Origin: Mobula hypostoma
Taxonomy: Eukaryota
Direction of reading: 5' to 3'
NCBI RefSeq assembly: GCF_963921235.1
Contig: NC_086118.1
Coordinates: 38,254,001 to 38,318,000 of the forward strand
DNA: 64,000 nt
Of this stretch, positions 20,480-54,900 are shown piece by piece. A program made the position numbers and the translations under genes. The notes under the pieces are model-generated. The model searched no databases, was not told the origin of the DNA, and saw only the letters and a program-made list of their open reading frames with translations. Each line of letters begins with the position of its first letter. The stretch's first letter is position 1.

Positions 20480-20812
20480 TTCTAAAAGAACAAGACCTCT
20501 TGATCAAGAGGTGGTGCCTCAGGTGTGTGGAATCCATCACTAAAGACCCTCACCATCATGAAAATGCCCTCTTCTCCTTATGATCATCAGGAAGGAGGTG
20601 CAAGAGCCACAGCACCGATGCTCAAAGATTTAGGAATAGCTTCTTCCCCTCCGTCAACTGGTTTCAAAACTCATGATCACTAGCTAATTTTATACAGTTT
20701 ATCTATTTTTGTAGTTTATTGTAGATTTATGCCTTTGCACTGCACTGCTGCAACAAAGCAACACATGTCATGTCATATATCAGTGTTGATAAATTTGGTT
20801 CTGATTCTGATA
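20480..20812 (+). mobile_element. Rex1-like LINE 3' end (old)
   Basis: atccatcactaaagaccctcaccatc...gataaatttggttctgattctga tail. Confidence 0.7.
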
Positions 20813-21415
20813 CAAGGTGATTGACAGTCAGAAAGAGAACGTGGAAACTCCACACAGACAGCTCCTAATGTCAGGATTGAACCATGGGCTCCGCTTCTGA
20901 AACGTTATTATCTTGGGCCAGTGCTAAGTTCTCAGAATGGGAATGATTATGAAACTACTGAATATTTCTGACCCTGATCACTTTCCAGCAAACTTTGGAA
21001 TAAACCTTTGTATGTGTCTGTCTCTGCGGGGAGATATCTGATCTAACTTATTTGTGAAAACTTTCTAGTTGAATAGCTTATTAATCAAACTTCAGACTCA
21101 GATTTAGGCAAGATGTAGGAGAACTACTCGAAATAAAATAGATGATGCACATCTTTCGAAGAGAGGGAATCAAAACTAGTGGGAGAAAAATGATTATTAT
21201 AAAAATAATTTCATTCCCACTACTTTCTTCCTGGTACTCCTGGAATTACTCCCCTTTACCTCCATGAATTGCTATAGTCCAAGGACAAATGACAACTGAC
21301 AATTTTTAAAGGCTTGAATCTGACAAATGAGCGTTAGGACCGGTTACTGCTGAGAGCAATGCCCTATGCATTTTTGGGCATCTACAGCACTGTGCAAAAG
21401 TCTTAGGCAAATATA

Positions 21416-23048
21416 CAGTGCCTATAAAGAGTATTCACCTCCCCCTTGTAAGTTATCATATTTTATTGTTTTACAACATTGAATCACAGTGGATTTAATT
21501 TGGCTTTTTTGACATTGATCAACAGAAAAATACGCTTTCGTGTCAAGGAGAAAACTACAAAGAGATTTAAATTAATTACAAATAGAAAACACAAAATAAT
21601 TGATTGTATAAGTATTCAGCCCCCCCCCCCTTTAATAGGACACACCAAATCATCACTGGTGCAGCAAATTGGTTTTAGAAGGCACATAATTAGTTAAATG
21701 GGGATCTGTTTTTGGAGATCTGTGTGCAGTCAAGGTATTTCAATTGACTGTGGTAAAAATACATCTGTATCTGGAAGGTCCAACTGCTTTTGAGTCAGTA
21801 CCCTGTAAAAAAAACTACACCATGATGACAAAAGAATACTCCAAGCAACTCTGCAAAAAGGTTATTGAAAAGCACAAGCCAGAAGATGGATACAAGAAAA
21901 TGTCCAAGTCACTGAATATCTTTTGGAATACAGTTAAGTCAATCATCAAGAAATGTAAAGAATATGATACCGCTGTAAATCTGCCTAGAGTAGGATGTCA
22001 TCGAAAACTGAAATGATCGTGCAAGAAGGGGACTAGTGAGGGAGGCCACCAAAAGACCTATGACAACTCTGGAGAAGTTACAAGCTTCAGTGGCTGAGAT
22101 GGGAGAGACTGCACATACAACATCTGTTACCCAGGTGCTTCACCAGTCACAGCTTTATGGGGGAATGGCAAAAAGAAAGCTACTGTTGAAAAAAACTCAC
22201 ATGAAATCTTGGCTAGAGTTTGCCAAAAGGCATGTGAGAAACTCTGAAGCCAGCTGGAAGAAGGTTCTGTGGTCTGATGAACCCAAAATTGAGCTTTTTG
22301 ACCATCAGACTAAATGCTATGTTTGGCATAAGCCAAACTCTGCTCATCATGAAACACGTACCATCCCTACCGTGAAGCATGGTGGTGGCTGCATCATGCT
22401 GTGGGATGCTTCACTGTACCAGGCGCTGGAAGGCTCGTGAGGGGAGAGGGTAAAATGAATGCAGCAAAATACAGGGAAATCCTGGAGGAAAACCTGATGC
22501 AGTCTGCAAGAGAACTATGACTTGGGAGAAGATTTGTTTTTCAGCAAGACATTGACCTCAAGCATAAATCCAAAGCTATAAAGGAATGGCTTAAAAACAA
22601 CAAGGTTAATGTCCTGGAGTGTCCAAGCCAGAGTCCAGACCTCAATCCAATTGAGAATTTGTGGCTGGACTTGAAAAAATCTGTTCACTCACAACCCCCA
22701 TGCAATCTGTCAAAGCTTGAGCAGTTTTATAATGAAGAATGAGGAAAAATTGCAATGTCCAGATGTGCAAAGCTGATAGAGACCTATCCACACAGACTCA
22801 AGGCTGTAATTGCTGCCAAAGGTGCATCTACTTGAATGCTTTGAATAATTATACAATCAACTATTTTGTGTTTAATAACTGTAATACATTTAGACCAATT
22901 TGTAGAAATTTGTTTTCACTATGACATGAAAGAGTCTTTTCCGTTGATCAGTGTCAAAAATGCTGAATTAAATCCACTATGATTCAATGTTGTAAAGCAA
23001 TAAAACATGAAAACTTCCAAGGGAGGTGAATACTTTTTATAGGCACTG
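21416..23048 (+). mobile_element. Full-length Tc1-family DNA transposon (IR/DR type), inactive
   Basis: ~210-bp TIRs beginning CAGTGCCTATAAA after TA, with an inner direct repeat (agtattca.cccc) near 21610. Confidence 0.95.
21822..22835 (+). pseudogene. Tc1 transposase, frameshifted (DD34E)
   Basis: Paired-like N-terminus MMTKEYSKQL..GYKKMSKSL, then VLWSDEPKIELF, then FQQD followed 34 residues later by E in SPDLNPIE. Contains stops and frameshifts. Confidence 0.92.
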
Positions 23049-23089
23049 AATAAAGCTAAGGTGCCTAAGACTTTTGCACAGTACAGTAG

Positions 23090-23372
23090 TGTTCCCTTGG
23101 ACCACAGGATCCAAGGGAACATATTGCCAGGCCATAGGGATTTATCGACCCTAATTTGCCTCAAGACAGGAAACATCTCCTCTCTTGTAATCTGTATAGG
23201 GTCCACGACTTCACGGCTTCTTCACTTCATTTCTGTAGACTCTGTGTTCCTCTCTCGACAGATGCAAAAAATCATTTTAAGATCTCCCCCACCTCTTTTG
23301 ACTCTAAGCATAGATCACCACTCTGATCTTCCAGAGGACTAATTTTGTCCATTGCTATCCTTTTGTTCTTAC
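23090..23372 (-). mobile_element. CR1 ORF2 internal fragment
   Basis: IQITREEMFPVLRQIRVDKSLWPGNMFPWILW. Confidence 0.7.
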
Positions 23373-23374
23373 TG

Positions 23375-23861
23375 CAGTACTGTGCAAATGTATTAGGCAC
23401 ATATATTCAGTTAGGGTGCACAGTACTGTAGTAACTTTCGTAATGCTTGTACTGCTGCCACAAAAAAAATTCATGACATATGTGAGAGATGATAAACCTA
23501 ATTCTGATATGGGTCTCTATGGTGGACTGAGAGTGGGAAAGGGACAGGGAGAGAGGTATCATGGTTGGGAAAAGGGGAAGGGAGAGGGGAGGGAGCAGGA
23601 AGCACCAGAGAGACACTCGGTAATGCTCAATAAAACAATTGTTTGGAATCAAATGGTCTTGCCTGGTGTTTCAGGGCTGGGTGTGTCTGCACTCATGCCA
23701 ACCCCCACCCCTGGCACTCCTTCTCTGCCACCTGTCCCACACCCCTCCCAGGGTGCTCCTGCTAGATTTACAAGCTCACTCCACACTCCACGTTGACAAA
23801 TTCAGTACTTTGCAAATGCCTTAGGCACCCTAGCTATTGTGCCTGGAATTACACAGTATTG
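23375..23861. mobile_element. Composite MITE bounded by two palindromic mini-elements, copy 1
   Basis: End units at 23375-23428 and 23803-23861; the interior is homologous to 52971-53343. Confidence 0.8.
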
Positions 23862-24421
23862 AAGGCAACCTTCGCTGCTTTTTCCAAACTTCATTCCCTC
23901 ACGGCCTTCCATCTGCTTGCTTGGTGTCATATCCCCTGCTCTGCTTGCTGACATTGCCCGCGGCAGCATCATTGGAGCTGGTATCTCACTGGCTTGCATG
24001 CTTGGTGCTGTGCGGCCAATCCACCAGGAAGGGCTAGTATAGCAGGATTGCCAAACACAGGACTACCCCTGAATTGATCCAGTCCAATGTGGAGTTATAA
24101 CTAGCCATCTAAGCAATTTTGCAGGATACTTGAACCTTTTCCTAATGTGGGGTTGGAAAGTCGCTGTAAGCACTGGTTACTGAATTATTGTTGAAACTTC
24201 AAGATTGTGGTCTTGGACTACAATTCCTGGTACAATAACTTTTCAGTGCAGATATAGAACCACATCAAATAGGAACAGGAGGAGGTAATTCAGCCCCTTG
24301 AGCCTGTTGCAACAAATGGGATGATAATGGCCGATCCTTTATTTTAGTACAGTACCATCCACCTCTCTCCTCCCAACTCACCTGATCCATTTTGTACCCA
24401 GAAATGTATCTGTCTCCTACT

Positions 24422-25880
24422 TAGAAACATAGAAAACCTACAGCAAAATACAGGCCCTTCAGCCCACAAAGCTGTACCGAACATGTCCTTACCTTAGAAA
24501 TTACCTAGGGTTACCCATAGCCCTCTATTTTTCTAAGCTCCATGTACCTATCCAGGAGTCTCTTAAAAGACCCTATCGTATCCACCTCCACCACCATCGC
24601 CAGCAGCCCATTCCATGCATTCACTACTCTCTGCATAAAGAAACTTACCCCTGACATCTCCTCTGTACCTACTTCCAAGCACCTTAAAACTGTGCCCTCT
24701 CATGCTAGCCATTTCAGCCCTGGGAAAAGGCCTCTGACTATCCACACAATCAATGCCTCTCATCACCTTATACACCTTTATCAGGTCACCTCTCATCCTC
24801 CGTTGTTCCAAGGAAAAAAGGCCAAGTTCACTCAATCTATTCTCATAAGGCATGCTCCCCAATCCAGGCAACATCCTTGTAAATCTCCTTTGCACCCTTT
24901 CTAAAATTTCCACATCCTTCTTGTAATGAGGTGACCAGAACTGATCACAGTACTCCAAGTGGGCTCTGACCAGGGTCCTATATAGCTGCAACATTACCTC
25001 TCAGCTCTTAAACTCAATCCCATGATTGATGAAAGCCAATGCACCGTATGCTTTCTTAACCACAGAGTCAACCTAGAAGGGAGGAGAAGATGGCAGCGCG
25101 ATGCAGCGCGTGTGACCACTCCGAAATGATATCGGTATTTGTTAAGTAGGTACCGTGCACAATCCTGATTTGATGGAGACAGAAGTGAGAAGCATGGAGG
25201 AACATCTGGAGAAACTTCTGAAATGCCTGCTTTGCTGCTGCTGCTACTGTGCGATCGAGAATCTCTGGAGGGGAAGGCCCCAAATCCTCGGCTTTGCCTA
25301 CTGCCTGTTGCCGGGGCCGGGGTCGAAGCGCTCGGCAGAGATGGTGCTCGGTTCTCAGTGTCGGAGGGCTGGTCGGAGGCTCGAAGTTTTCAGATGGACT
25401 CAAGAGTCGGCTGTGGTCGGGTGCTTCCAAGGTGCTGCATCGGCAAGTTTGCAGTGCTGGAGGTTCATGGCAGGGAGAGTTTCTCCCTTCTACCGTCTGC
25501 GTGAGATGATAGGACTTTCGAGAGACTTTGAGACTTCTTTTTTACCGTGCCCGTGGTCTGTTCTTTATCAAATTATGGTATTGCTTTGCACTGTTGTAAC
25601 TATATGTTACAATTATGTGGTTTTTGTCAGTTCTTTTTTAGTCTTGGTTTGTCTTGTGTTTCTGTGATATCATACTAGAGAAACATTGTATCATTTCTTA
25701 ATGCATGCATTACTAAATGACAATAAAAGAGGACTGCATGTCCTCATAATCTAATTTTAAAAAATCTGCGCAGCAGCTTTGAGTGTCCTATGGACTTGGA
25801 CCCCAAGATCCCTCTGATCCTCCACACTGCCAAAAGTCTTACCATTAATACTATATTCTGTCATCATATTTGACCTACTA
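24422..25880 (-). mobile_element. CR1 LINE 3' part, interrupted by the 680-bp element
   Basis: MLQLYRTLVRAHLEYCDQFWSPHYKKDVEILERVQRRFTRMLPG, with a ttctatgt tail. Confidence 0.9.
25075..25762 (+). mobile_element. ~680-bp non-autonomous retroelement, copy 2
   Basis: Inserted in CR1 with an approximate TSD aacct / aatct. Head ggaggagaagatggcagcg; tail tgacaataaaagaggactgcatgtcctcataatctaat. Confidence 0.9.
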
Positions 25881-26982: not shown

Positions 26983-29505
26983 TTTCTCTGAATTTCAAGA
27001 TAGTAGCTTCCTTTTCATACTGATTGCCATAAACTCTACTCTCAGCAAAGATCATATGCCACACAGAAATAGAATAGCTTCATAAGACCTGTATGCAAAC
27101 CTAGCTGAAGCTAAGCTTTGCATTAATTTAGTGCTCTATAAGTTGGAATGAGAATCTCAGTCACATACATATTCACCCAGGCCTTGTACCATTTTGCAAG
27201 TCGCCGATAAACTGCTGTAATTTTTGAAGCTGTATTCACTTTTGTTATGATATCTTTTGTAATACCGGTGAATTGAATCCTGTAAGCACTCACGAGGTTA
27301 GATCTTTAATATCAAATCTTCTTTTACCAAGATCGAAGGAGACCTAACAATATTGTTTTTTTAATGGGGGTCTGGCTACTTGTTGGACCCCTGAGGTCAG
27401 TTTATCAACAGGATTTCAATCAGTGAAGCAAATATCCAGCATGCTTCTACCTATCTGTAACTTCTCATTCACCTCCCAGAAATGCTGATGTGAAGATCTC
27501 TAATGGTATGTATCCCATTCATCCACCTTTGCAATGCCAATATATTGAATCTTAACAAGTATTAATCCATTAATATACCTTTTGGATTTAATTGCCAGAA
27601 CACTTGACCACAATAGATACCATTCACTCCCCTTTGAGATGGTGGTGGGCGGTCCTGTGACTCACGGGGTGAAAGGTTACAGCCATTATAAATCTCCATG
27701 TCTACTGGCTGAGGAAACAATCAGACAAAAATGTTTAGTTAAACCATACAAGTCTTTGATTGATCCGAACACTGCCCAGATTCTCTGCGGTGTAAAAAAT
27801 AAATCAAAGTCCACAAGAAAGAAAGGTTTGTAGAGTCCTTCTTTGTCTTCCCAGATCGTCTCTTGAAAAAGAGGAGGCTTGCTCCTGCACGAGTGCACAG
27901 GTTCTGAGGTGACTGATGAGTGTTATGTGGAATTCAAAGCCTAAATGGAGCTTGATGAGAGAAGTCACTGGGCTTATTCCACTCTTTACCCCGGCCTTCC
28001 ACATGATCTCATCTGAGAGGCTGAAAAAGGACAAAGTGATTTCCGAGATGTTTCTTTACTTCAGCATGTTACACACTCTTGAGCCAGAGGTTCCAGTGAG
28101 CCAGTGATGATTCTATATTTTCCAGGGAGGATTTGCAAGTGCTTTTCTCTTGAAAAGCATTTTCTCTGACAATAGATTATCCATCTAAGTGCCCTCAGTT
28201 CTGATCAGTTATACTTCCTGGAAGTTGTTTGCCACCTCACCTACTCGATTTGTCGCCATTTATGCCCCCCATGCCTATGTCAGGCCCCATATGTGGGACC
28301 AATCCCATGACTATTGCATAGGCTAATCCTGAGCATCTGTACTTTCAAATACCAGCTTCCAATCGTAGACTGATACAGCACTAGATGTCCATCAACTCCA
28401 TTTCCGTTATGTTTTGTAACTCCTAAACATAGAATTAATTGAAAGAAAAACACGGAGCCGGGAATAAATTTGTGTACTTTGTTTTTGCTTTAGTGAAGTG
28501 TGCAATTATGACGTAGTGGTGTAATGATGTATGTCATTCACGTACTTTTACACAGCATAATAAATTTTAATTTGTCCTATTCAGGCTTAAAGATTTAATC
28601 ACTGTGGAGGATTTCTTACTCTTGTGGGACAACATCTTTCCTGACAAGGGTGGAGTCACTCTGCTTGGCAGGTGAGACTTGTGCTGTGAAACAATCTCAG
28701 ATATTGGGGCCTCCTCTGCAGTGGTTGTAGGAACTGACTGGGACTGCAGGAATTGGTTCTGACAGCCCTGGACACCGTTCTTCTCCAACAATTTATTCTG
28801 CTCTCCTCAATTGATCGGTGTGTCATCTCCAGATGACATCAGACACAATCTTCACTGCATAGGAGAGTGGTCCAGTTCTATACCTCAATCTTTCCTGGTA
28901 CCCACTTTTGATCACCACTATAGTCCCATGTTAGGCCTGCTTGTTCAGGAGTGAAATATAGAACATGCTTGTATGAGGAGCACTCATTTTGTCTCAGCTA
29001 TTTGTCCTGCATACTCCTTCTGAGATTGGGTTTGAGGAGGTCCGAGCACGAATGCCATGGACGACCCAGGAGCAACATAGTGGGTGAGTTGTTAGTTGTG
29101 GAGTGTGCTGCCTTGGTTTATGCAAGGTGGAAAATGGCGATCTTCTAGTCAAGTGTTGGAGTAGTGTGTTCTGCTGACATTGCTTGCAGTGCATTTTTAG
29201 ACTCCGGACAAACCTGTCCACCAAGCCATTTGTAGCTGGATGGTACAGTGCAGATGTAATATGAGGTACTCCATTCAACTTCAGGAATGACTGAAGCTGT
29301 TTCACAACAAACTGTGGTCCATTGTCACTGACTAAGTGTTCTGGAATGTCAGGTCTTGAGAAGAGGCTTCTCAACACATCAGTCGTGTGCAAGGCTGTAA
29401 TGAAGGCTATTGGGAACACTCCTGGCCACTTTGTAGCCACTAATGCCAAGAAATTTGTGCCCACGAATGGTCCAGCAAAATCCACATGAAACTTCTGCCA
29501 GAACA

Positions 29506-29990
29506 ATGAATTGAATTGACTTTATTTCTTACATCCTTCACATACACGAGGAATAAAAATTTTTATGTTACGTCTCCGTCTAAATGTGCATTGTGCAATT
29601 ATAGTAATTTATAATAATTTATAACAAATAGAACGGTCAATGTAGCATAGAAATACACTCAGAGCAGTGTAAGTTAATCAGTCCGATGGCCTGGTGGAAG
29701 AAGCTGTTCCGGAACCTGTTGGTCCTGGCTTTTATGCTGTGGTACCATTTTCCAGATGGTAGCAGCTGGAATAGATTATGGTTGGGGTGACTTGGGTCCC
29801 CAATGATCCTTCGGGCCCTTTTCTTATACCAGTCTTTATAAATGTCCTGAATCATGGGAAGTTCACAACTACAGATGCGCTGGGCTGTCCGCACCACTCT
29901 CTGCAGAGTCCTGCGATTGAGGGAAGTACAGTTCCCATACCCGGCAGTGATGCAGCCAGTCAGGATGCTCTCAGTTGTGCCCCTGTAGAA
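29506..29990 (-). mobile_element. Rex1-like LINE 3' end inserted in the Gypsy integrase region
   Basis: FYRGTTESILTGCITAGYGNC...HNLFQLLPSGK...RNSFFHQAI, with an aataaagtcaattcaattca tail. Confidence 0.88.
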
Positions 29991-36374: not shown

Positions 36375-36638
36375 AGTTGCGGTGGACATCCTCAAGAAAG
36401 AGTGAAGTTTCTGAGATACACAAACCACCCCTTCTGGCACCAACAATCATTCCATGGTCAAAGTCACTTAGATCAGATTTCTTCCCCATTCTGATGTTTG
36501 GTCTGAGCAACAACTGAACCTTCTGACCATGTCTGCATGTTTTTATGCATTGAGTTGCTGCCATATGATTGGCTGATTAGACATTTGCATTAATGAGCAG
36601 GTGTTCAGGTGTACCTAATAAAGTGGCCACTGAGTGTA
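36375..36638 (-). mobile_element. Tc1-like element left end with transposase N-terminus
   Basis: TIR (TA)cactcagtggccactttattaggtacac and MGKKSDLSDFDHGMIVGARRGGLCISET. Confidence 0.85.
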
Positions 36639-36639
36639 T

Positions 36640-37435
36640 AATCATAATCAGTTTTATTATCGTTGACAAATGTCATGAAATCTGTTGTTTTGCAGTGGCG
36701 ATACAGTACAAGATGTAAGAATAGTGATAATTTATAACAGATTGATAGATAAAAGAGGAATAGTAAGATTATGAACTTGAGATGCTGAAAATCCAAAACA
36801 AAACACACAAAATGCTGGAGGAGCTCAGCAGCATCTATAGAAGTAAATAAACAAAGTTTATTCAAGATCAACATTTCAGTCCAAGACCCTTTGTCAGGAT
36901 GGAAAAGGATAGGAGAAGACGCCAGAATAAAAAGGTGGCAAACTTGTGCTCATGGACTGTTTGATAAATCTGATGGCGGAGAGGAAGAAGCTGTTCCTAA
37001 GCTGTTGAGTCTAAGTCTTCAGGCTCCAGTACTCCTCCCTAATGGTAGTAACGAGAAAAGGGCCTGACTCAGATGATAAGGATCTTTAATGATGGATGCT
37101 GCCTTCTTGATGCACTGCCTTTTGAAGAAATCCTCGATAATGGGGAGGGTTATGCTTGTGATGGAGCTGGCTAGCCTACGAGCCTCTGCAGTCTCTCCTG
37201 ATCCTGCACATTGGAGCCCTCAGACTGAGCCATGATGCAACCAGTCCGAACACTCTCCACTGCAACAGCTTTTGGTGGCATACCAAATCTCCCAAGAACT
37301 CCTAATGGAGCTGGCGAGCTGTCTTTGTGCTTGCATTAATGTGTTGGGCCCAGGATAGATCCTCTGAGATGCTCATGCCCAGGAACTTGAAGTGGCACCA
37401 GTCGTCCTCAGTAAGGACTGGTGTATGTTCTACTG
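36640..37435 (-). mobile_element. Rex1-like 3' fragment with a nested Penelope pseudo-LTR (~36780-36940)
   Basis: Rex1 motifs gaaggcagcatccatcattaaaga and cttaggaacagcttcttccc; pseudo-LTR acacacaaaatgctggaggagctcagc. Confidence 0.7.
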
Positions 37436-41814: not shown

Positions 41815-44800
41815 ATGAGAGTCATGGAGTTACAGAGAATTACAGCACAGAAACAGGCCATTCGAACCATCTGGTCCATGCCGAACCATTAATCTGCCTA
41901 GTCCCATCGACCTGCACCCGGATGATAGCCCTCCATACCCCTCCCGTCCATGTACAGTACCTAACCAACTTTTTCTTAAAATCCACCACTTGTGCTGGCA
42001 GCTAGTTCCACATTCTCACCCACCCTCTGAGTGAAGAAGCTCCCCCTCATATTCCCCTTAAACATTTTACCTTTCACCCTTAACCCATGATCTCTAGTTG
42101 TAGTTTCACCCAACCTAAGTAGAAAAAGCCTGCTTGCCTTTAGCCCATCTATACCCCACATAATTTTGTATACTTCTATCAAATCTTCTCTCGTTCTTCT
42201 GTGTGTAAGGGAAAGAAGTCCGAATCTATTCAACCTTTCCCTATAACTCAGGACCTCAGGTCCCGGCAACATCCTTGTAAATTTTCTCTGTACTCTTTCA
42301 ATCTTATTTACACTTTTTCCTGTAGGTAGGTGACCAAAACTGCACACAATACTCCAAATTAGGCCTCACCAACATCTTATAAAATTTCAATATAACATCC
42401 CATCTCCTGTACTCAATGCATTGATTTATGAAGACTAATGTGCCAAAAGCTTTCTTTTGGACCGTATTTACATGTGACGCCACTTCCGGGGAATTATGGA
42501 CCTGTATTTCCAGATCCTTTTGTTCTACAGCACTCCTCACTGCCCTACCATTCATTCAGTAAGACCTACCCTGGCTGGTCCTCCCAAAGTGCAACACTTC
42601 ACATTTGTCTGCACTAAATTCCACCTGCTATTTTTCAGCCTGTTTTCCCAGCTGGTCTAGATCCTGCTGCAAGCTTTAATAGTCTTCCTCTCTGTCCACT
42701 ACACGCCCAGTCTTGGTGTCATCTGCAAATTTGCTGATCCAGATTACATTACCGTCCAGAATATAGATATAGATAACAAGCAACAACGGACCCAGAACCG
42801 ATACCTGCAGTGCATCTCTAGTCAAGGCCTCCAGTCAGAGAGGCAACTGCTCTCTGGCTTCTCCCACAAAGCCAATGTCTAATTCAATCTACTACCTCAT
42901 CTTGAATGCCAGGCGAATGAATCTTCTTGACCAGCCTCCTATGTGGAACCTTGTCAAATACTTTGCTAAAGTCCAAGTAGACAACATCTACTGCCTTATC
43001 TTCATCAACTATCTTGGTAACATCCTCAAAAAAATATAAGATTGGTTAGAAAGGTCCCTTTCACTGGTGAATACTGAACCAAATGATTCATTAAGTACCT
43101 CCGCTACCTCCTCTGACTCCACGCATGTTTCCACTTTCACTCCTGATTGGTCCTATTCTCACACGGCTCATCCTCTTGCTCTTCACATACTTGTAGAATG
43201 TCTTGGGGTTTTCCTTAATCCTGCTTGCCAAGACTTTTTCATGGCCCCTTCTAGCTCTCCTAATTTCATTCTTGAGCTCCTTCCTGGCACCCTTGTAATT
43301 TTCTGGAGCTTTAACAGTACTTAGTTTCTTGAACCTTTCGTAAGCTTTTCTTTTCTTCTTAACTAGATTTTCTACATCCTTCATACACCATGGCTCTTTT
43401 ACCCTACCATCCTTACTCTGTCTCAATGGAACATATCTGTGCAGAATACCATGCAAAACTTCCCTGAACATTTGCCACATTTCTGCCGGGCATTTTCCTG
43501 AGAAAATATGCTCCCGATTTATGTTACCAAGTTCCTGCCTAGTAGCATCATATTTTCCCCTACCCCAATTAAATGTTTTCCCAAATGCTCTGCTCCTATC
43601 ACTCTTCAGCGCTATAGTAAAGGAGATAGAGTTGTGATCACTACCTACAAAATGCTCTCCCACTGAGAGATCTGACACCTGACCAGGTTCATTTCCCAAT
43701 ACCAGATCAAGTACAGCCTCTCCTCTAGTTGCCTTATCTACATATTGTGTCAGCAAACCTTCCTGAACACACCTAACAAACTCCACCCCATCTAAACCCC
43801 TTGCTCTAAGGAGATGCCAGTCAATATTAGTCAAGTTAAAATCACCCATACTACTACCTGTTATTATTGCACTGTTCCAGAATCTGCTTCCCTATCTGCT
43901 CTTTGATGTCTGTGTTACTACTGGGGGTGTCTATAAAAAACACCCAGTAGAGTTATTGCCCCCTCCCTGTTTCTGAATTCCACCCACAATGACTCAGTAG
44001 CCAATCCCTCCATGATTTCCTCCTTTTCTGCAGCTGTGAAACTATCGCTGATTAGCAGTGCCGCTCCCCAACTCTTTTGCCTCCCTCCCTGTCCTTTTCG
44101 AAACATCTAAAGCCTAGCACATTCAGCAGCGTTCCTGCCCCTGAGTCATCCAAGTCTGGGTAATGGCCACAACATCATAGTTCCACGTATTGATCCACAC
44201 TCTAAGTTCATCCGCCTTGCTTTTGGTGCTCCTTGCAGTAAAATAGACACATCTCAAACCACCTGGCTGAGTGCATCTTTGCTCTTTCATCTACCTATCC
44301 TTCCTCCTAAACTGCCTACAAGCTGTCACTACTTGTGCGCCAACCGTATCATCCTCGGCCTCTTTACTTCAGTTCCCACCCCCTGCAAATCTAGCTTAAA
44401 CCCTCCCCATTAGCATTCGCAAACCTCTTTCCTAGAATATGGTTCCCCTCCAGCGAAGGTGCAACCTCTCCCACTTGTACGGGTCACCCTTTCCCCAGAA
44501 AAGGTTCCAATCATCCAAGAACCTGAAACCCTGCCCCCTGCACCATCTCCTCAGCCACTCATTCATCTGCACTATCTTTCTGTTCTGCACAGGGCCTCTA
44601 ACCACCCCCCCCATGTCTTTGGTAACAACGCGTACCACAACCTCTGGCTGCTCACCCTCCCCTTCAAGAATATTCTGCAACCACTCAGAGACATCTTGGA
44701 CCCTAGCGGCCGGGAGGCAACACACTATCCTGGTGACTCTTTTGCTGCTGCAGATCTCCTATCTGTCCCCCTAACTATCGCGCCCCTATGACTATTGCTC

Positions 44801-52889: not shown

Positions 52890-53369
52890 CAGTACTGCAC
52901 AAAGGTCTTAGACACATATATGTATATACAGTATACATAGCTAGGGTCCTAAAACCTTTGCACAGTACTGTAGTGATTATATGCATTTCAGTGTACAGCT
53001 GCCACAAAAAACTTATGATATTTGAATGATGACAAACCTGATTCTGAAATTGGATTCTGTTGTGGACTGAGGGTGGGAAGGGAGCAGAGGAAGCATAATC
53101 ATGGTTGGGAAAAGGGGAAGGGAGAGCGGAGCGAGTGGCAAGCCCCAGAGAGACATTCAATAAACCAATTGTTTGGAATCAAATGACCTTGCCTGGTGTC
53201 TCAGGGCTGGGTGTGTCTGCACCCGTGCCAACCTCCGCCCCTGGCATTCCTCTGCAACCTATCCCACACCATTCCTGCAATACTCCACCCTCGCCATTCC
53301 CAGCAAATTTACAAACTCGTTCTCTGCTCCACAGTTACAGATATAGTTCTGTGCATAAGCTTTAGGCGC

Positions 53370-53402
<33 letters not shown>

Positions 53403-53442
53403 ATATATATATATATGTGCCCAAAACTTTTGCACCGTAGTG
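52890..53442. mobile_element. Composite MITE bounded by two palindromic mini-elements, copy 2 (contains (TATC)n(TA)n)
   Basis: End units at 52890-52970 and 53344-53442, TA flanks, interior homologous to copy 1. Confidence 0.8.
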
Positions 53443-53790
53443 TAGCTTGAAGCTGTGCCATTGCTGAAATCTTACTTTCAAAGATGGTTTAACATTAATT
53501 ATCACTCATGTCTCATCCCCATTCCGACTTTCTCGTCATCATCCTCATTCAGCCCCTCTGCTCATTGCTCATTCATTACCCATCAGCCCCTGCTGACTTT
53601 CTGCCCATTTGCCACTCATCTTTCTTTATTCATGTTCAAGATCCAGACATCACGGGCAAGGCCAGTATTTACGGCCAATCCCTTATTGCCTTTGAGAAGG
53701 GCCAGGCGAACGTCTCCTCGAATCATTGTGGTCCCACTGGTGAAGTCTTCACAGTGCTGCTGGGGAGGGAGAGCAAAGACAATGACGGAC

Positions 53791-54900
53791 TAGAATCAGA
53801 ATCCGGTTTAATGTCTCCTGCATATGTCGTGAAATTTGCTAACTTAGCAGCAGCAGTACCATGCAATGCATGATAATATAGAGAAAAATAAATAAAAATT
53901 AAAAATAAAAAAGTGAATCAATTATATTAAATAGCTAAATTACAAAATAGTGCAACAACAGAAGTAATAAAAAAACAAAAATTAAGTGAGGTAATGTTCA
54001 TGGGTGTAATGTCCATTTAGGAATCGTATGGCAGATATGTATTGCTGAGTGTGTGCCACCAGGCTTCTGTACCTCCTTACTGATGGTAACAATGAGAAGA
54101 AAGCATAAACTGGGTGATGGCGGTCCTTAATAATGGACGCCATCTTTCTGAGTAACTGATCCTTGAAGATGTCTTCGATACTATGGAGGCTAGTACCCAA
54201 AATGGAGCTGACTAATTTTACAACTTTCTGTAGCTTCTTTTAATCCTGTACAGTTTGCCCTCCCCCATACCAGATGGTGAGGCAGCCTGACAGAGTGCGC
54301 TGTACAGTACATCTGTAGAATACTTCGAGTATTTTAGGTGACAAACCAGATCTACTCAAACTCCTAATGAAGTATAGCCACCGTCTTACCTTATTTATAG
54401 CTGCATCGATATGTTGGGACCAGGTTAGATCTTAACCCCCAGAAACTTGAAATTGCTCACTCTCTTCACTTCTGATCCCTCTATAAGGGTTGGTTCGTGT
54501 TCCCTTGTCCCACCCTTCCTGAAGTCTACAATCAGCTCTTTCATCTTACTGACACTGAGTGCAAGGTTGTTGCTGCTACACCACTCAACTAATTTGTACA
54601 TCTCGCTCCTATACGCCCTCTTGTCTCCATCTGAGACTCTACCAACAATGGTTGCATCATCGGCAAATTTATAGATGGCATTTGAGCCACGCAGCCATTG
54701 GTATGGAAAGAGTAGAACGGTGGGCCAAGCACACATCCCTGAGATGAGCTAACGTCGATTGTCAGCGAGGAGGAGATATTATTACCAATCCACACAGATT
54801 GTGGTCTTCCGGTTAGGAAGTCAAGGATCCAATTGCAGAGGGAGGTATAGAGGCCTAGGTTCTGTAGTCTTCAGGACTGTGGGAATAATGGTGTTAAATG
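53791..54900 (-). mobile_element. Rex1/Babar-like LINE RT and 3' UTR
   Basis: [36 protein letters not shown], with a gattctgattct tail. Confidence 0.88.

Follow-up and report, generated by a model that had tools for sequence, protein, structure and literature searches.

Composite transposons and palindromic mini-elements

Composite transposons are textbook elements in bacteria. In Tn5 and Tn10, the cargo lies between two copies of a smaller mobile element, which gives four ends in total, and the outer pair moves the whole. To our knowledge, animal composite transposons are known mainly as engineered vectors or as rare large events. A limited literature search gave no account of MITEs in batoids and none of a natural composite of the Tc1 type.

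TIME-COMP comprises bacterial composites bounded by MITEs, with the cargo placed between two copies of a mobile element (PMC13367494). The engineered "sandwich" (SA) vector of Sleeping Beauty consists of two complete Tc1-type elements set head-to-head around the cargo and moves from the outermost ends (PMC4229213). The mini-element Made1 is composed of two 37-bp repeats and a 6-bp spacer (PMC1784062). Mini-MITEs accompany simple-repeat mariners and not the Tc1 elements of the IR/DR type, and very short substrates have been suggested to synapse poorly (PMC5224488). The Tc1/mariner elements have expanded in skates and rays, where they make up 2-3% of the genome as compared to 0.1% in sharks (PMC12361510).

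The locus considered here is located in a 64-kb stretch of ray DNA, referred to below as the window (the whole stretch that was analysed). It carries two copies of an element that probably represents a non-autonomous family of Tc1-type DNA transposons with a composite ("sandwich") structure, in which two mini-MITE units enclose captured DNA and the whole is mobilised in trans. The cross-species data were Logan contigs of four coded species aligned at an identity of at least 80%.

Two copies of the composite element

An earlier note on this DNA described two dispersed copies sharing a common interior. Both are present, copy 1 at 23375-23861 (487 bp) and copy 2 at 52890-53442 (553 bp), and their mean identity is 79% from outer end to outer end in a pairwise alignment that included 50 bases of flank. 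The two copies consist of the following parts:

23375-23428, plus strand: left hairpin unit of copy 1; outer arm 23375-23400, inner arm with an internal deletion of about 13 nt; TG outside, TA (23429-23430) inside
23431-23508, plus strand: cargo of copy 1, part 1; fragment of a LINE 3' tail ending in ...AATTCTGA, adjoining the inner TA of the left unit
23509-23800, plus strand: cargo of copy 1, part 2; anonymous non-coding DNA with a purine-rich stretch, an internal duplication zone and a pyrimidine-rich stretch
23803-23861, minus strand: right hairpin unit of copy 1; loop orientation opposite to that of the left unit; inner flank TT, outer flank AA
52890-52970, plus strand: left hairpin unit of copy 2; enlarged AT-rich loop; TA on both sides
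52973-53341, plus strand: cargo of copy 2; LINE tail at about 52973-53047, then anonymous DNA; 79% identity to copy 1
53344-53442, minus strand: right hairpin unit of copy 2; (TATC)n(TA)n microsatellite in the loop at about 53370-53416; TA on both sides

The end of the left unit of copy 1, previously placed at about 23432, is corrected here to 23428. The homology of the two copies spans the region from the left outer end CAGTACTG to the right outer end (...CAGTATTG / ...CCGTAGTG), and its limits coincide with the outer CAGT.../...ACTG ends. The comparison of the flanks, which the earlier note had put forward as a test for segmental duplication, showed them to be unrelated directly outside the outer ends, so that a segmental duplication of the two copies is ruled out. 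In both copies, the unit-interior-unit alignment continues without interruption over both unit-interior junctions.

As had been claimed, the units face opposite ways at the two ends of the element. The arm model gives an identical arrangement for both copies, with the outermost arm on the ATAT side of the loop and the innermost arm on the CCTAGC side. This shared arrangement indicates that it was inherited and not put together twice. A foldback structure of the whole element was ruled out, since the whole-element fold of copy 1 gave z = -0.75 and only the end units fold. Directly before the left end of copy 1 there is TA-CTG (23370-23374; TACTG followed at once by CAGTACTG), which resembles the TA+CTG footprint of Tc1-type excision and may be due to chance.

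Arms, loop and TA flanks of the hairpin unit

On either side of the cargo there is a complete copy of a smaller mobile element, each end of the composite being a full arm-loop-arm structure. The unit is built from two inverted 26-nt arms of the Tc1 type (consensus CAGTACTGTGCAAAAGTCTTAGGCAC, starting with CAGT) around a short asymmetric loop. Intact units in the contigs of the four species give a consensus of 26 + 15 + 26 = 67 bp, in which the 15-nt loop is AT-rich. The arm model recovers exactly 10 arms in the 64 kb, corresponding to five units (two per copy and one solo), and no others. All ten arms fit one model of terminal inverted repeats of the Tc1 type (5'-CAGT...). When up to three mismatches were allowed, the 26-mer of the arm had four matches in the window, while none were expected from shuffles.

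Hairpin folding of the units against shuffled sequences gave z = -5.9, -3.2 and -2.8. The fourth unit reached only z = -0.4 because the (TATC)n(TA)n microsatellite fills its loop. The view that the ends are palindromic mini-elements in their own right was upheld, each end being a hairpin with two CAGT-type arms around a loop. The unit loops seem to seed simple repeats, as seen from the microsatellite in the right unit of copy 2 (53370-53416) and the enlarged loop in its left unit.

A TA target-site duplication is found at the solo unit and at the outer ends of copy 2 (TA/TA in both cases), and the outer dinucleotides of copy 1 are TG/AA, each one base away from TA. The inner dinucleotides are TA/TA in copy 2 and TA/TT in copy 1. 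Of the ten unit ends, seven therefore adjoin an exact TA, which agrees with the earlier description of the units as mostly TA-flanked. The remaining three ends are one base off, which is reasonable for copies that are 21% apart. CAGT is kept in three of the four inner arms (the right unit of copy 2 has TAGT), and all four inner arms adjoin TA or a one-base variant of it. The four ends of the Tc1 type that had been proposed for each element, two per unit, are accordingly present, each at TA or a one-base variant.

Solo unit and the nested Tc1 element

The same unit had been reported to occur alone at 21385-23086. A solo unit is indeed found there; however, it is not bare, being split at its central TA by a Tc1 element of 1,633 bp:

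21385-21415, plus strand: left part of the solo unit; arm 21385-21410 and first half of the loop; TA at 21383-21384
21416-23048, plus strand: nested Tc1 pseudogene of another family; its ends start with CAGTGCCTATAAAGAGTATTCACC; it sits in the central TA of the solo unit
23049-23086, plus strand: right part of the solo unit; second half of the loop and arm 23061-23086; TA at 23087-23088

The nested Tc1 belongs to the IR/DR type and has terminal repeats of about 205 bp that are 81% alike. Its transposase frame is broken, and the pieces match the Pfam families HTH_SB, HTH_Tnp_Tc3_2 and DDE_3. In a word search with the Tc1 protein, matches were obtained only to short metagenome contigs and to proteins of bony fish or frogs. 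An extra G after 22402 is present in about 30% of the related Tc1 contig depth in all four species. This indicates that the copy in the window has a one-base deletion at 22402, where the transposase frame shifts (pieces 22012-22437 and 22353-22517).

In hundreds of contigs from the four species, the end of the nested Tc1 at 23048 is followed by TA and unrelated sequence. Many contigs of the four species also contain joints from 21415 to 23054..23062, which correspond to the unit without the Tc1, and the loose end before 23050 reads as an intact left arm plus ATAT. Since the Tc1 ends at unrelated sequence and units occur without it, the two are separate families. On the same grounds, the unit was rejected as an outer end of the nested Tc1 (a compound TIR). 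The window contains one solo unit with TA/TA flanks; intact units, be they solo or part of composites, are present in many contigs.

When the arm of the unit is compared in register with the ends of the nested Tc1, both have CAGT and the AAAAGT.TT core, and 14-15 of 26 positions agree, a value that about 4% of shuffles equal. The unit is therefore Tc1-like but of a family other than that of the nested Tc1. No autonomous Tc1 with the ends of the unit was found in the 64-kb window, where the sole Tc1 present has different ends.

Nature of the cargo

The interior of about 370 bp comprises a LINE 3' tail in its first 75-80 bases and about 290 bases of anonymous DNA. That the interior starts with a LINE tail had been noted before and is confirmed by its alignment to three other tails in the window, at 20716-20816, 36625-36720 (minus strand) and 53780-53880 (minus strand). 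The first of these closes a highly repeated LINE 3' region. The tails in the window are too short to tell the Rex1 type, proposed for this LINE in the earlier note, from CR1 or L2. In copy 2, the homology to the LINE tail reaches to about 6 bases from the inner TA of the left unit. The anonymous part varies in the relatives, which have a variable internal duplication of 30-33 nt (joints near 23588->23558). The cargo of copy 1 carries a deletion after 23759 relative to the family consensus (loose end at 23759).

The tail at 20716-20816 is followed by a short piece of another repeat at 20817-20883 (...AAACTCCACACAGACAG...GGATTGAACC), which is truncated at 20883. Most contigs related to this repeat continue with TGGGTCTCTGGAGCTGTGAGGCAGC (loose ends in species B and H).

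The interior showed no similarity to the gene of the nested Tc1, and a word search with the translated interior gave no protein relatives. Nearly all of the cargo in copy 1 is covered by an open reading frame of 126 aa (23416-23796, plus strand), which is most likely due to chance, since the word search gave no relatives of it and the frame is interrupted in copy 2. No tRNA, 7SL or 5S head was detected in the interior at E up to 1, and no RNA family scored above noise. The RNA-family search yielded solely sub-threshold matches to generic miRNA hairpins, and these were located on the units. The interior was thus ruled out as a SINE or a structured RNA, as it has no tRNA, 7SL or 5S head and its LINE tail is at the left end, which is wrong for a SINE. 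Exact-pattern scans of a metagenome collection with the arm and with a 22-mer of the interior gave no match. Judging from its sequence, the cargo is not transposase-derived and has the appearance of ordinary genomic DNA in which a LINE end was included.

Spread, copy number and age of the family

The unit-cargo junctions are found well beyond the window. In the joints 23090->23448 and 23088->23748 (opposite strand), a unit end is connected to one end of the cargo, left or right. Both are among the best-supported joints listed, with 4-12 contigs for each joint in every one of the four species. In all species, the summed depth of the cargo exceeds that of the single-copy flanks by a factor of 1-4 x 10^4, which is a rough figure and not a copy number and may be inflated by the purine-rich stretch. 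The two copies in 64 kb are of the same order of magnitude as this contig-depth estimate. The element is therefore short (487 and 553 bp), non-coding and multicopy, with a depth of roughly the order of 10^4 times single copy.

Movement of the whole as one piece from its outer ends is supported by the unrelated flanks of the two copies, by their homologous inner junctions and by the unit-interior joints in four species. The earlier proposal that the element moved as one unit thus held for the two copies, and many paralogous contigs in the four species support it as well.

Orthologous contigs running from the cargo or the right unit into the single-copy right flank were found in species B (98% identity) and species H (93%). 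Those running from the single-copy left flank into the left arm of the solo unit were found in all four species, with identities down to 88%. As these orthologous insertions are common to the species, they predate the divergence of the species and are old. The family is long dead, as seen from the 21% divergence of the copies, the decayed arms and the microsatellite in one of the loops.

The three-unit block and its neighbourhood

Three hairpin units are located within 2.5 kb, at 21385-23861. Exactly between the solo unit and copy 1 there is a further repeat:

23089-23372, minus strand: fragment of another dispersed repeat, 284 bp

The depth of this fragment is about 2,000 times single copy, and the flank depth is 12-15 (20902-21303) and 11.6 (23850-24251). 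The DNA outside the block is single copy (20902-21384 and 23862-24385). The 284-bp fragment is cut exactly at the two unit ends and has no continuation beyond them. Read on the minus strand, it presumably corresponds to the part of a LINE ORF2 that immediately precedes the reverse transcriptase domain. An Atlas search gave a weak lead to reverse transcriptase, and tblastx gave no matches between the fragment and the other LINEs of the window.

As the repeat fragment is cut at the unit ends and the DNA outside is single copy, a simple nested insertion into an old LINE fails as an explanation. The block (unit, 284 bp, unit, cargo, unit), which is flanked by TA and AA, may have moved as one from its outermost arms. 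Alternatively, it may have arisen through repair filler DNA, as proposed for Pack-TIRs (PMC8277862), or through deletions ending at the unit borders.

Farther to the right, an extremely abundant repeat starts at 24422, with a summed depth above 10^6 in all four species and with A/T-rich unrelated DNA before its start in hundreds of contigs. Other remnants of mobile elements were observed at 28997-29506 (minus strand) and 43094-43849 (minus strand), with an integrase core domain (rve) and a LINE endonuclease/reverse-transcriptase piece.

Proposed origin and alternative explanations

An origin of the element through the insertion of two units and the capture of the DNA between them is plausible. 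The building block would have been a 67-bp palindromic mini-element in the style of Made1, composed of two 26-nt terminal repeats CAGTACTGTGCAAAAGTCTTAGGCAC and a 15-nt loop. Two such units would have inserted about 370 bp apart in inverted orientation around a LINE end and anonymous DNA. A Tc1 transposase, presumably acting in trans, would then have recognised the two outermost arms and excised the whole piece of 490-550 bp. This piece would have been pasted into TA sites and amplified to roughly 10^4 copies before the compared species diverged. That such a layout is mobile is demonstrated by the engineered Sleeping Beauty sandwich, in which the inner ends had to be inactivated (PMC4229213). 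With every unit palindromic, any two units in either orientation would give usable outer ends, and the block of solo unit, 284-bp fragment and composite could be a second product of the same process. Both the mobilisation in trans and the kind of transposase are what we infer here; since mini-MITEs do not occur with Tc1 elements of the IR/DR type (PMC5224488), the abundant nested Tc1, which is of that type, is an unlikely driver.

Several points count against the composite reading. The window yielded neither an autonomous Tc1 with the ends of the unit nor a donor locus of the interior. The outer flanks of copy 1 are TG and AA and not TA. A deletion between the directly repeated arms could in principle turn a composite into a solo unit. 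Furthermore, the inner ends still look cleavable, so the element should also fall apart, and yet it was amplified. Poor synapsis of very short substrates might be the reason why a composite of 500 bp out-competed a unit of 67 bp, although this is speculative.

The solo units would acquire a different meaning if the element were an internal-deletion derivative of an unseen autonomous Tc1 with internally palindromic terminal repeats of about 67 bp. In that case no capture by two mini-elements took place, and the solo units are secondary, having arisen by arm deletion or by use of the ends of one unit. The perfect TIR symmetry of the whole element and the same unit orientation in both copies would suit such a descent, and a deletion between the arms, which are directly repeated over 26 nt at a distance of about 400 bp, could leave a solo unit. 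However, nothing in the interior resembles a Tc1 gene, and the part of it that adjoins the unit at its start is a LINE 3' tail. Moreover, each unit has TA or a one-base variant next to its inner as well as its outer end, as expected for separate insertions, and intact units are frequent in the contigs of the four species. We consider this derivation unlikely. The inner TA dinucleotides also bear on the possibility that the cargo came to lie between the units through DNA repair, by gap filling or template switching after excision or in replication, and that transposition followed only afterwards. This is also improbable, as those dinucleotides fit ordinary insertions, and gap filling within one unit would give arm-cargo-arm instead of two complete arm-loop-arm units. 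In its favour, multicopy animal Pack-TIRs are ascribed to replication fork switching with subsequent transposition (PMC8277862), and the 284-bp internal repeat fragment lying exactly between two units, with single-copy DNA outside, would fit filler DNA too.

It could finally be supposed that nothing moved as a composite at all, the interior being an independent repeat (a SINE or a LINE derivative) that was hit repeatedly at two hot-spot TA sites, or else part of a segmental duplication. The high repetition of the interior is the one observation that speaks for this; the flanks, however, are unrelated directly outside the outer ends, and both the junction positions and the unit orientations are identical in the two copies and in the paralogous contigs. 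The lack of a tRNA, 7SL or 5S head and the location of the LINE tail at the end that is wrong for a SINE also contradict it. This explanation is largely refuted and highly improbable.

A broader reading of the composite and of the block can be offered tentatively. The palindromic mini-Tc1 units might capture DNA irrespective of their orientation and might in this way have repeatedly given rise to natural "sandwich" transposons in rays, one of which reached about 10^4 copies. The block at 21385-23861 might then be a second-generation compound of three units that entered single-copy DNA in a single jump and brought the 284-bp LINE fragment with it. If true, this would be a eukaryotic counterpart of the formation of composite transposons in bacteria, caught at two successive stages.

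Significance of the element

If a natural "sandwich" of the Tc1 type reached tens of thousands of copies, this would demonstrate that paired mini-MITEs are able to mobilise host DNA of any kind in the vertebrate germ line. The element is relevant to the expansion of Tc1/mariner elements in skates and rays (PMC12361510). It also raises the mechanistic question of why a four-ended substrate with intact-looking inner ends was successful, possibly in connection with the 67-bp unit being too short for efficient synapsis (cf. PMC5224488). In practice, the element matters for the annotation of repeats, as unit, cargo and LINE tail will be separated or wrongly named by automatic libraries.

Comparison with known systems

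The ray element is a genuine and clearly defined structure, a naturally occurring Tc1-type composite, and should be seen as a structural curiosity and not as a new kind of system. At the level of the unit, it is similar to Made1 / MiHsmar1 (the 80-bp palindromic MITE of human Hsmar1), which likewise has two terminal repeats with few bases between them, a near-perfect palindrome, a TA target and thousands of copies (PMC1784062; PMC5224488). Unlike in Made1, the arms of the ray unit are Tc1-like (CAGT...AAAAGT.TT core) and not mariner-like, and pairs of the unit carry cargo.

The Pack-TIR and Pack-MULE elements resemble the ray element in being TIR transposons with foreign host sequence that became multicopy by transposition (PMC8277862). 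Pack-TIRs carry captured gene fragments between the ends of one element, whereas the ray element has non-coding cargo between two complete elements.

With the Sleeping Beauty sandwich, the ray element shares two complete Tc1-type elements flanking the cargo and the movement of the whole as one (PMC4229213). In the vector, the inner ends are mutated and uncuttable, while in the ray element the inner CAGT is kept in three of four cases and TA or a one-base variant adjoins all four. In addition, the ray units are 67 bp long and are not full IR/DR elements, and the ray composite is natural and was amplified to about 10^4 copies. The closest natural analogue is TIME-COMP (PMC13367494). Unlike Tn5, Tn10 and TIME-COMP, the ray element belongs to the eukaryotic Tc1/mariner superfamily, has a TA duplication and gene-free cargo, and forms a dispersed repeat family.
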